This document shows, piece by piece, positions 7,188 through 42,712 of a DNA stretch of 64,000 nt. The notes beneath the pieces are model-generated. The model searched no databases and was not told the DNA's origin. It saw only the letters and a list, made by a program, of their open reading frames with translations. Positions within the stretch are counted from its first letter, which is position 1, and each line of letters begins with the position of its first letter. The position numbers and the translations under genes are program-made. The stretch is taken from sequence record MZ443771.1; one strand, written 5' to 3'.

Positions 7188-7243
7188 TCTGCAAATAACT
7201 GGTCAAAATAGCTCTTTATACGCACACGCGCCCGTGATACAAT
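7188..7243 (+). promoter_or_regulatory. Repeated phage promoter (CTGGWCAAAAT box + extended -10)
   Basis: TCTGCAAATAACTGGTCAAAAT-28nt-TACAAT with TG at extended -10. Confidence 0.75.
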
Positions 7244-7296
7244 ATATGCAGACGCTACACAACGTAGCACATACAACTAATGCTGAGGAGCATACA

Positions 7297-7623: not shown

Positions 7624-7676
7624 GCAAATATCTGGTCAAAAGCGCCGTTGCTTGAAGACGTGTGACGGCGTATTAT
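7624..7676 (+). promoter_or_regulatory. Repeated phage promoter
   Basis: GCAAATATCTGGTCAAAAG-28nt-TATTAT; TTGCTT 17 nt upstream of -10. Confidence 0.7.
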
Positions 7677-7725
7677 GTAATCTCTAGCGCAATGACGCGC
7701 TCAACACTGAAAGAGGCAACAAACA

Positions 7726-8540: not shown

Positions 8541-8602
8541 TCATCATCTGACTGTGGCGTTACGGCGCCACATACTTCACATTCTAATTGAGAGAACATG
8601 CC

Positions 8603-11669: not shown

Positions 11670-11714
11670 CTGGTCAAAATAGCCGTTCTATTTAGTAGCT
11701 CGATATGATATACT
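11659..11714 (+). promoter_or_regulatory. Repeated phage promoter
   Basis: First 25 nt identical to 7188-7212; box-28nt-TATACT with extended TG. Confidence 0.75.
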
Positions 11715-11762
11715 AAGAGCGAGCGCTATTGCTCAAAAACAACTAAAGCTGAGGAGCTTATC

Positions 11763-12203
11763 ATGACTACTACTTACAACATCGCTGATCTGAAAACCCC
11801 TGAAATGTTCGCAGATGCCCGCCTGGGTCACTTGTCAGATTTTGCTGATAAACTTCGCGCTCTGCTGGGTCGTGAAGATATGTATCTGGAACTTGAAGCA
11901 GAAGAGGGCGCTGATATTTCCGATGTGTGCCCTGATGCAGATTCTGTTGTGGGTGACAATCTGATCAACCTGCACATTCATTATGCAGATGACCCTGATC
12001 ATGTAAGCGATAAGGGTGCATGGTACGCTTACTTAGCTTTCCCTCATGTTGAAAATCACTGGGGCGAGTGGACAAATAGTTTCATCCTGTTTGTCGAATC
12101 TAACGACGGGGATTTCCTTGAAGAGATCGCGTTCGAAAATGGCAACCCGAAAATGCTGTCTGATATTGTCGACCGCATTAACTACTGGTTCCCTGCCGAG
12201 TAA
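11763..12203 (+). CDS. Acidic hypothetical protein
   Basis: SD GAGGAG. Confidence 0.8.
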   Translation: MTTTYNIADLKTPEMFADARLGHLSDFADKLRALLGREDMYLELEAEEGADISDVCPDADSVVGDNLINLHIHYADDPDHVSDKGAWYAYLAFPHVENHWGEWTNSFILFVESNDGDFLEEIAFENGNPKMLSDIVDRINYWFPAE

Positions 12204-12250
12204 GTGATTTGTGTTGAGCATTCGCTGAGTGCTCAATGAAAATCCAAACA
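12201..12250 (+). repeat. Intergenic hairpin repeat, copy 1
   Basis: GATTTGTG-TTGAGCATTCGCTGAGTGCTCAA-TGAAAAT. Confidence 0.8.
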
Positions 12251-12274
12251 ACACCCTAAGCTAAGGAGCTTAAC

Positions 12275-12592
12275 ATGTCTTCATCTACTACTCTGACTTT
12301 CATCTTCCCAGAAATGACTACTCTGGAAGTTTCAATCGGTAACGGCGTTGTGCCCGCTTATCTGGGTCTCGCAGAAAACAGAGACATAACATTCAGCGAT
12401 GTTAAAGCGCTGCGTCTGATGGGCGATTCGAACATCGTGGGCGCAATGAACCGCTTCGATCAGTCGATGCTTAACATGCTGATCGCCCGTCATGAAACGC
12501 ATGAGCACATTCGTTGCCGTGATGCAATTGAGCAGGGTACTGAGTATTTCCCGTCTACTTGTCTCTACCTGAAAGTAGCGCACCACCGCTAA
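12275..12592 (+). CDS. Hypothetical protein
   Basis: SD AAGGAG. Confidence 0.8.
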   Translation: MSSSTTLTFIFPEMTTLEVSIGNGVVPAYLGLAENRDITFSDVKALRLMGDSNIVGAMNRFDQSMLNMLIARHETHEHIRCRDAIEQGTEYFPSTCLYLKVAHHR

Positions 12593-12636
12593 GATTTGTG
12601 AAGGGCATTCGCTGAGTGTCCTTTGAAAATCAAACA
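12590..12636 (+). repeat. Intergenic hairpin repeat, copy 2
   Basis: GATTTGTG-AAGGGCATTCGCTGAGTGTCCTT-TGAAAAT; compensatory stem changes relative to copy 1. Confidence 0.8.
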
Positions 12637-12655
12637 CTGTTCTGAGGAGAACAAC

Positions 12656-13009
12656 ATGCACAACATCGAACTGCCTGTAGACGCTCGCCACTTTGACGAT
12701 CTGACCAACGCAGAGTTCCTGCAAGTGTGTCGCGCTCTGTCTACTGTCACGGGTCGTGAAGACCTTGAGTTTCGTTCGCATCTGATGAGTCGCTTCATCG
12801 ACATTGCGTATCGCTCTGGCGGCACTAACACGTTCGGTATCAGTAAGTGCCGTGTGCTAATGCCGTCAGAAGTTCAACGTGAGGATATCGTTGAAGACTT
12901 CGAGATTCATCACGGCGATGCAGTCATCTCTATCGAACGCCAGCGCGATACAGAGACAACGCTGCAACGTATCGCAGGTGCCATTGAAGCCTGTTTGCCG
13001 AGAGAGTGA
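12656..13009 (+). CDS. Hypothetical protein
   Basis: SD GAGGAG. Confidence 0.8.
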   Translation: MHNIELPVDARHFDDLTNAEFLQVCRALSTVTGREDLEFRSHLMSRFIDIAYRSGGTNTFGISKCRVLMPSEVQREDIVEDFEIHHGDAVISIERQRDTETTLQRIAGAIEACLPRE

Positions 13010-13080
13010 TTGTTGCTCGCAGATTCTTACGAGAGTCTGCTGTCAACATAACCCAAACCACCTAGGCTGAGGAGCTTAAC

Positions 13081-13491
13081 ATGAAACAATTCCCACGTCG
13101 CGGCGAAACGTATACGCTGAAACAAATCGAAACTGAACTGGACCTGCGTGACGCACCGTTCCTGCGTTTCATCCCGCAGAAAGTGCGTTATGAGCATGAG
13201 AGTGCAGCGGGCATTCAGGTTATTCAGTCTGCGAATGTCGTTGACCTGCATCACCTTGACGGCTGGGCAGACACTGAGTGGGTATTCGTTCGTGAAACCG
13301 AAGAGTGGATTCCACTGTTCCGTGCGAAAGACGATGCCGCGATTGAAGCGCTCTGTGTTATCGAGCCTTCTACCGATTACAGTAGTCGTATTGATGGCGG
13401 TATGCACATCTACCCGAAAGGTACTGAGCATCGTCAATACGAACCGTATGACGAGAAGCTGCATGGCGATCTGCTGGTGGCAGTAAAATAA
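13081..13491 (+). CDS. Hypothetical protein
   Basis: SD GAGGAG. Confidence 0.8.
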   Translation: MKQFPRRGETYTLKQIETELDLRDAPFLRFIPQKVRYEHESAAGIQVIQSANVVDLHHLDGWADTEWVFVRETEEWIPLFRAKDDAAIEALCVIEPSTDYSSRIDGGMHIYPKGTEHRQYEPYDEKLHGDLLVAVK

Positions 13492-13497
13492 ATAACA

Positions 13498-13528
13498 GGG
13501 ATGCTCGCATAAGCGGGTGTCCCATTTT
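13498..13528 (+). terminator. Intrinsic terminator
   Basis: GGGATGCTCGC-ATAA-GCGGGTGTCCC then ATTTT. Confidence 0.75.
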
Positions 13529-13573
13529 ACATTCGGGTCATTAACCTGAATACTTAACTTGAAGGGAAATAAA

Positions 13574-27703: not shown

Positions 27704-27775
27704 CAGGCTCGCCTGCACTTCTACTCAACGTGGAGCTTACGGGCTTCACAAAATTCACTATCAATGAGGTTCAAA

Positions 27776-29785: not shown

Positions 29786-29830
29786 CTGGACAAACTAGCG
29801 CTTCGATTTGAGGCGCTTTTCTGCTATAAT
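29779..29830 (+). promoter_or_regulatory. Repeated phage promoter
   Basis: CAAATAACTGGACAAACT-28nt-TATAAT with extended TG. Confidence 0.75.
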
Positions 29831-29897
29831 AGCAGCTAGAGCAATATAGCTCTCAACGTCATTTTTAACTATACGTTTATCACGGGAAACTTTTATA

Positions 29898-34813: not shown

Positions 34814-34858
34814 TAGGCTGAAATCGCCGTACTGTCTAAAGTGCGTTTATGCTACAAT
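34806..34858 (+). promoter_or_regulatory. Degenerate copy of repeated promoter
   Basis: GCAAATAATAGGCTGAAAT-28nt-TACAAT with extended TG. Confidence 0.6.
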
Positions 34859-34890
34859 ATGCGTAGACGCACTAACAAAGAGAAAACGAT

Positions 34891-37029: not shown

Positions 37030-37076
37030 TCTATCAATAGCGGCAGCGCTCACGGGTGCTGCACAGGAGAAACATT

Positions 37077-39217: not shown

Positions 39218-39271
39218 AGCAAAAATCTGGACAAAATGAGGGTAGTATGCGAAACTGCCCTATGCTATAAT
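39218..39271 (+). promoter_or_regulatory. Repeated phage promoter
   Basis: AGCAAAAATCTGGACAAAAT-28nt-TATAAT with extended TG; 26 nt identical to 41479-41504. Confidence 0.78.
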
Positions 39272-39322
39272 AGAAGCGTAGCATGTGCTACGCTTTCTAA
39301 CGTATGTCTGAGGAGACAAATC

Positions 39323-41479: not shown

Positions 41480-41532
41480 GCAAAAATCTGGACAAAATGA
41501 GGGTTGTCTCAAAACAGCGCCCCTGATACAAT
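41479..41532 (+). promoter_or_regulatory. Repeated phage promoter
   Basis: Box-28nt-TACAAT; TTGTCT 17 nt upstream; extended TG. Confidence 0.8.
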
Positions 41533-41539
41533 ATAAAGA

Positions 41540-41733
41540 CAGCGAGACATGTTCTCTCTGTTATGTGCCTATAACGTTTTGACCGTGTGTTTATCTTTTC
41601 CCGGGCACACGGTCCTTTTTAAAGTCGCTTCGATGAGGCTGCTTTAAAAAGGGTTCAATACCCTTTGAGCGCACCGGGCTTTACGCGGTTTCCGCCTTGT
41701 GTGCTCTCATGCTAAACCGCAAAGGAAATAGAT
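41540..41733 (+). ncRNA. Structured ~195-nt 5' leader or ncRNA with candidate pseudoknot
   Basis: Stems 41581-89/41606-14, 41616-24/41642-50, 41667-74/41699-706, and loop 41685-91 complementary to 41714-20. Confidence 0.55.
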
Positions 41734-42596: not shown

Positions 42597-42652
42597 ATGC
42601 AGAAAACTGGACAAAATCGTGGTTGTTATCTGACAGCCACCTATGCTACAAT
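42597..42652 (+). promoter_or_regulatory. Repeated phage promoter
   Basis: AAAACTGGACAAAAT-29nt-TACAAT; TACAATATATGCAGACGC identical to the 7238 copy. Confidence 0.78.
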
Positions 42653-42712
42653 ATATGCAGACGCAGTGAGCGTCGAAATCAAACTAAACAACAATACTGA
42701 GGAGTATTTATC

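Follow-up and report, generated by a model that had tools for sequence, protein, structure and literature searches.

The RNase III processing of the polycistronic mRNA of bacteriophage T7 is textbook knowledge. The T7 early region contains five RNase III sites, and the stems folded here fit their positions on the T7 map; one of these sites, R1.1, lies between genes 1 and 1.1. Another small hairpin of phage RNA, the boxB of lambda, has a short stem and a conserved loop which is read by the N protein.

Site R1.1 is described in PMC4858673 and in the introduction of PMC1540722 as being cut once, leaving a 3′ hairpin. For the Escherichia coli enzyme, PMC1540722 (Pertzev and Nicholson) gives a target in which the cut and the apical loop are separated by a helix of 11 bp or more and which has two boxes of preferred base pairs. 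The distal box is a U-A pair followed by a U.G pair, the latter being stringently required, so that its replacement by A-U or G-U is predicted to lower cleavage 30- to 50-fold, and the first three positions of the proximal box are G-C, then A-U or U-A but never G-C or C-G, then A-U. Position 4 of the proximal box adjoins the cut and is A-U or U-A; G-C and C-G suppress catalysis there, and some pairs at this position uncouple binding of the enzyme from cleavage. The full set of contacts needs roughly 22 bp, about two helical turns (PMC1540722). In processing signals of the R1.1 class, an internal loop confines the cutting to one strand. A further kind of intergenic element is the PeSL of T4-type phages, a composite of an early promoter and a terminator stem-loop (PMC2839356, PMC4122927).

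The stretch of DNA analysed here, the window, is the final 64 kb of MZ443771.1, the genome of Erwinia phage pEa_SNUABM_20 (265,871 bp; Alexandravirus; host Erwinia amylovora), to which the 3 kb surrounding the repeat are 100% identical. Between window positions 1 and 50000, every gene annotated in GenBank is on the + strand and is labelled hypothetical. Four small genes on this strand (11763..13491) are kept apart by hairpins: gene 261 (11763–12203, 146 aa), gene 262 (12275–12592, 105 aa), gene 263 (12656–13009) and gene 264 (13081–13491). No function is assigned in GenBank to 261, 263 and 264, and gene 262 matches a PHROG of unknown function; this is the only PHROG match among the four, and none of them matches a Pfam family. 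Their homologues are confined to related jumbo phages. The proteins flanking the repeated junctions described below are only 15–21% identical to each other and are not paralogues; therefore, the repeat unit is the junction and not the gene, and gene duplication was rejected as its source.

Genes 261–264 appear to form a single operon, transcribed by a polymerase of the sigma-70 type, since a promoter-like region lies upstream of them and a terminator-like hairpin downstream. The promoter region, read from the sequence at 11670..11734 (+), contains the conserved upstream motif CTGGTCAAAAT (11670–11680), an extended −10 (TG at 11706–11707 and TATACT at 11709–11714) and, downstream of the −10 region, the 5′ hairpin of the operon (11721–11734). 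We treat this promoter as putative because a simple −35/−10 scan does not list it. The hairpin which closes the operon (13498..13533, +) has 11 pairs, a short U run and the tail ATTTTACATT, and is kept in relatives. The grammar of the promoter region is repeated at seven other intergenic gaps in the window (the full set being 7215–7260, 7636–7680, 11670–11734, 29789–29835, 34820–34865, 39229–39290, 41489–41560 and 42606–42680) and consists of CTGG(T/A)CAAAAT, ~28 nt that often hold a variable hairpin, an extended −10 TGnTAnAAT and a 5′-terminal hairpin. The CTGG(T/A)CAAAAT motif is too far from the −10 for a normal −35 and may therefore be the site of a phage or host factor.

The original prediction had pointed to two consecutive junctions, behind genes 261 and 262, as a repeated hairpin with a covarying outer stem, a fixed loop and fixed flanks. 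Both of the 38-nt strings that it quoted are found, at 12206–12243 and 12593–12630 (+), with no mismatches to the pattern, which has no match in 100 dinucleotide shuffles. The covariation of the outer stem is real, the five variable positions on each side being complementary in both copies, in the second with one G.U pair. What had been taken for a fixed 13-nt loop is instead more of the stem, five further base pairs closed by a 3-nt loop, and the apical loop differs in relatives. The flanks are the same in both copies as claimed, but they are not unpaired: GAUUU and AAAUC pair as a lower stem.

In RNAfold, the two copies of this element (A1 and A2; element A) form a lower stem of 5 bp, separated by a GU/GA internal loop from an upper stem of 11 bp whose basal pair is G.U and which carries the apical loop, with energies of ~−18 kcal/mol. 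The total helix is thus ~18 bp (5 bp, two non-canonical positions and 11 bp). The top five pairs of the upper stem, C-G, A-U, U.G, U-A and C-G, surround a 3-nt loop. Hairpin A1 (12206..12244, +; −17.8 kcal/mol) follows the stop codon of gene 261: its lower stem pairs 12206–12210 with 12240–12244, the internal loop is GU 12211–12212 opposite GA 12238–12239, the upper stem pairs 12213–12223 with 12227–12237, and the apical loop is 12224–12226. From the pair table and the rule-based scan described below, its distal box is U.G 12221.12229 and U-A 12222–12228. Hairpin A2 (12593..12631, +; −18.0 kcal/mol) comes directly after the stop codon of gene 262, with the lower stem at 12593–12597 and 12627–12631, the internal loop at 12598–12599 and 12625–12626, the upper stem at 12600–12610 and 12614–12624, and the apical loop at 12611–12613.

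It is extremely unlikely that A1 and A2 are intrinsic terminators or attenuators. They are stable, GC-containing hairpins right behind stop codons, and a model derived from the T7 sites (below) also matches true terminators, yet both lack a U tract, as originally noted, the stem being followed by the tail UGAAAAUC, and a terminator scan which lists the hairpin at 13498–13523 omits both of them.

In the whole genome there are only two copies, found alike with the 13-nt core at zero mismatches and with covariance models R1 and R2, and the idea of a genome-wide element was rejected on this count. Versions of the element occur in seven jumbo-phage genera, with 1–3 copies per genome of 250–270 kb, all of them in this one operon. 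Comparison of the junctions with those of nine relatives yielded 12 distinct versions, drawn from 10 phages. In the alignment of these 12, 99.5% of the cells pair, against 34–62% in shifted registers, and four pairs have changed on both sides. With more distant phages included, 23 versions from the seven genera (sources include Alexandra, Y3, JA29, Yersinia phage fHe-Yen9-02 and SNUABM_5) have the fold of element A, with compensatory changes in both stems; the lower stem, for example, appears as GAUUU/AAAUC, ACAUU/AAUGU and GGUU/AACC. Model R1 scores A1 at 66.3 bits on the + strand and 19.7 on the − strand, and A2 at 72 and 20 bits, the fold being specific to the mRNA-sense strand because of its invariant G.U and U.G pairs. 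The A1 hairpins are 95.7% identical between phages whose gene 261 proteins are only 37–57% identical, which argues for selection on the element itself. No Rfam family matches; the best hit, to retron msr and on the minus strand, scored 22.5 bits where the cut-off is 52 (E 0.94), and we took it as chance.

The apical loop is free in both sequence and length (3–6 nt) among the 23 versions, in which it reads GCU, GAC, AAC, UGU, UCU, AGU, UGCG, CAAC, UAAC, UAGC, UAAU, GAAA, UUCU, GUUGCU or CACCA. The original prediction had offered a boxB-like antitermination element as one explanation, and this is not supported: boxB is read through its loop, which is conserved, and that of element A varies. Element A resembles lambda boxB/nut in being a small RNA hairpin in an early phage transcript, and differs in its variable loop, its 18-bp stem and its place between cistrons inside an operon. 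Any site for a phage-encoded RNA-binding protein, be it of this kind or a translational operator, seems to us very unlikely. The conservation does exceed structural need, and includes a GU/GA internal loop for which there is no counterpart in T7; but besides the variable loop, the end of the hairpin is >25 nt upstream of the next start codon, the two copies are the only ones and lie inside one operon rather than at its start, and the conserved pairs are the very ones that coincide with RNase III determinants.

This coincidence is close: the positions of element A that never vary fall on the published recognition elements of the E. coli enzyme. With the basal G.U included, the upper stem measures 11 bp in A1 and A2 and in 17 further versions, and 10 bp in the four versions which have a UGCG loop. 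U-A and U.G form the distal box in 23/23 versions across the seven genera, and are invariant in the 12-version alignment. In the proximal box, all 23 versions have G-C at position 1 and A-U or U-A at position 2; at position 3 most have A-U, the A1 of SNUABM_20 and of SNUABM_32/17 has U-A and the outlier from SNUABM_5 has G-C, so that positions 2 and 3 are both A-U or U-A in 22 of the 23. Position 4, beside the predicted cut, is G.U in 21/23, and one JA29 copy has U-A there. Between the boxes and the loop, the pairs are free to vary. A rule-based scan, coded from the rules in PMC1540722 after the match had already been noticed, picks out A1 and A2 only on the two strands of the window and R1.1 only in the T7 early region, with a mean of 0.06 matches in shuffled windows.

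The T7 sites themselves can be compared with element A in both directions. The upper stem of A2 agrees with that of R1.1 at 20 of 24 aligned positions. Model R1, which was built from jumbo-phage elements alone, has R1.1, R1, R0.5 and R1.3 among its five best matches in 6.2 kb of T7, with weak E-values of 0.14 to 3. Conversely, a model made from the five T7 early sites alone has A2 as its top match in the window (19.6 bits, E 0.0025), but it is not specific, because four ordinary terminators elsewhere in the genome score above A2. The terminators scoring on this model are on the minus strand outside the window (MZ443771.1 157147–157176, 106356–106385, 147119–147146 and 176334–176361); they are very uniform intrinsic terminators, built as AAAGGG-stem-CCCUUUUU and in many cases capped by a UUCG-type loop. 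Scanning IMG/VR for the upper-stem pattern gave 88 matches, 36 T7-like, eight Alexandra-like and 44 others including true terminators; since it also occurs in true terminators of other phages, the upper-stem motif alone is not diagnostic. Eight IMG/VR loci of uncultivated phages (L040, L046, L054, L057, L061, L092, L093 and L099) have an R1.1-like upper stem with complementary flanks of their own and no U tract, and judged from their sequences are candidate RNase III sites outside the T7-like phages and the jumbo group. An origin of the operon by horizontal transfer from T7-like phages is not supported, because homologues of genes 261 and 262 are found only in related jumbo phages.

We consider it probable, from the sequence and from the analogy with T7, that A1 and A2 are intercistronic processing signals of the R1.1 type for the host RNase III. 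Of the explanations originally put forward for the repeat, a processing site is thus the one favoured. The enzyme would be that of the host, as a search with working controls found no phage-encoded RNase III (PF14622); nor was a phage-encoded RegB (PF10715) found, in a search that had no positive control. Host RNA polymerase would probably transcribe the four-gene operon from its extended −10 promoter near 11709 as far as the terminator near 13500, and the RNA behind genes 261 and 262 would fold into the irregular hairpin of 18 bp. The two boxes would be what RNase III recognises, the distal one (U-A/U.G) beside the apical loop and the proximal one (G-C/A-U/A-U) at the foot of the 11-bp upper stem. 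The enzyme would cut within the GU/GA internal loop or beside it, on its 3′ side after 12239 in A1 and after 12626 in A2 if R1.1 is a guide. The upstream mRNA would be left with a protective 3′ hairpin, and the downstream cistron would be set free behind a short leader bearing its ribosome-binding-site hairpin. We infer the binding and cutting by RNase III, the location of the cut and the effect on mRNA stability and translation from the features described above. Among assembled contigs from a wastewater metatranscriptome, one ends at 12206 and another spans A2 (12485–12659), the ends of RNA molecules not being readable from contigs. No publication dealing with transcription or with the processing of RNA in Alexandravirus was found. 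To our knowledge, RNase III processing of mRNA has not been described for the jumbo phages of Alexandravirus, Snuvirus, Sasquatchvirus or Salmondvirus.

Several features count against the processing reading. The pair beside the predicted cut is G.U where A-U or U-A is preferred; the helix is ~18 bp, whereas E. coli substrates typically have two turns, with an upper stem of 10 bp in four versions; and copies are few and in one operon. The first two are what would be expected of a hairpin that is not cut, setting the lifetimes of the cistrons either as a barrier to 3′–5′ exonucleases or by binding RNase III without cleavage. The G.U at proximal position 4 is off the optimum, at a position where, according to PMC1540722, some pairs uncouple the two activities, and stable hairpins free of U tracts follow many other genes in the window (e.g. 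at 8541–8602, 27704–27775 and 37030–37076). We nevertheless think such an uncut hairpin fairly unlikely: a plain barrier needs stability alone, yet U-A, U.G, G-C, A-U and A-U, together with GU/GA, are fixed across seven genera.

The junction behind gene 263 has a hairpin of its own, B (13010..13050, +; −16.8 kcal/mol), which follows the stop codon. Its architecture is that of element A, with a lower stem (UGUUG/CAACA), a small internal loop and a 9-bp upper stem with a UACG tetraloop, U-A and U.G pairs near the top, and no U tract, but its sequence is different and it has no helical proximal box. Hairpin B is conserved across Alexandravirus, where a compensatory change has turned A-U into G-C. 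Covariance models R1 and R2 both miss it, and the T7-site model matches it weakly (11 bits). It may be related to element A and have diverged from it, or may simply serve as a stabiliser. Snuvirus, Yoloswag and SNUABM_5 have B-like versions behind other genes.

The shared start context which had been noticed at 11748, 12260 and 13066 is also real and belongs to a second type of hairpin. Each of the four genes is preceded by a hairpin that presents GAGG or AAGG in its loop and whose stem covaries: AAGCU-GAGG-AGCUU at 11746..11759 for gene 261, and its counterparts at 12257–12272 (gene 262), 12638–12653 (gene 263) and 13063–13078 (gene 264), all on the + strand. In the window as a whole, 10 of the 80 annotated starts (7297, 11763, 12275, 12656, 13081, 39323, 40806, 42713, 44396 and 47769) have a hairpin of 4–6 bp with GAGG or AAGG in the loop 7–11 nt upstream, compared with such a stem at 2/321 of the other [GA]AGG words on the + strand. 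The stems include AAGCU/AGCUU, GUUCU/AGAAC, AUGCU/AGCAU, UGUCU/AGACA and AUACU/AGUAU, and most of the genes concerned are the first to follow a promoter or a hairpin.

It is at this ribosome-binding-site module that genes have come and gone. Gene 261 and A1 are missing together in AD1, SNUABM_33 and SNUABM_30, and the indel is bounded by a repeated 20-nt module (loci compared: L014, from AD1, at 2162–2253, L015 and L018, against window 11670–12274); this joint is seen again, at 12258, in a metatranscriptome contig. An additional gene of 105 aa, accompanied by a hairpin, is present in SNUABM_7, the 117-aa gene is missing from SNUABM_34, and SNUABM_17 and SNUABM_32, near-identical in this region, differ in the module after A2 (L011 versus L010, near 2430), which suggests gene conversion between junctions. 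The cassette-capture site that was the other proposal of the original prediction therefore holds loosely, in that gene 261 with A1 is present or absent among relatives, but the breaks are in the ribosome-binding-site module and not in hairpin A. Nothing in the data points to a site-specific recombinase.

These gains, losses and swaps, together with the precedent of PeSLs in T4-type phages (PMC2839356, PMC4122927), are what would be expected if the junctions were DNA-level recombination modules, serving as homology for the shuffling of cassettes in the manner of PeSLs or as folded single-strand sites resembling integron attC. As the explanation of element A, we regard this as highly improbable. 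Besides the position of the breaks, the compensatory changes and the G.U pairs point to selection on an RNA fold. The junctions resemble PeSLs in that conserved intergenic regulatory motifs flank small variable genes of unknown function and in that the end points of indels between close relatives fall in a repeated motif; they differ in having neither promoter nor terminator and in breaking in the ribosome-binding-site module. A scan found no promoter-like site in junctions 12204–12274 and 12593–12655, the sole promoter-like region being that which precedes the whole operon. Gene shuffling may be a by-product, compatible with processing by RNase III.

Processing and shuffling could be connected, though we offer this only as a tentative and rather doubtful suggestion, if the junction, with its RNase III and ribosome-binding-site hairpins, were a portable linker, through which inserted accessory genes would be independently processed and translated and whose repeats would provide homology for the exchange of cassettes among co-infecting jumbo phages. 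That the signal is nearly identical to T7 R1.1 would in that case mean either that it has passed between unrelated enterobacterial phages or that these have converged on the best RNase III substrate; if they have converged, the 23 natural variants would confirm the rules of the distal and proximal boxes in vivo.

Some of these jumbo phages serve in phage cocktails against fire blight; the genomes of the group are annotated almost wholly as hypothetical proteins. If confirmed, element A would be their first concrete post-transcriptional signal and would mark a small operon which the phage takes care to split into separate messages. It would also provide a natural variation series in which the determinants of the two boxes, defined in vitro, are kept by selection, and would extend the classic T7-type mechanism to a new group of phages.

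The comparison with T7 can be drawn as follows. Like R1.1, element A is an intercistronic hairpin in a polycistronic early-type mRNA, without a U tract; it has an upper stem of 10–11 bp with a U-A/U.G distal box and a G-C/A-U/A-U proximal box; and the helix is interrupted below the upper stem, which is where the T7 site is cut once. As in the early processing of T7 (PMC4858673), a promoter, here putative, lies upstream and a terminator-like hairpin downstream of the operon. The internal loop of element A, on the other hand, is small and symmetric (GU/GA) where that of T7 is larger and asymmetric, and its lower stem is just 5 bp. At position 4 of the proximal box, R1.1 has a mismatch and element A a G.U pair, and the flanks are GUG...UGAAAAUC in element A and CUC...UAUGAU in R1.1. 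Finally, element A belongs to an unrelated myovirus of 266 kb and is present in 1–3 copies per genome, compared with the five sites of the T7 early region.
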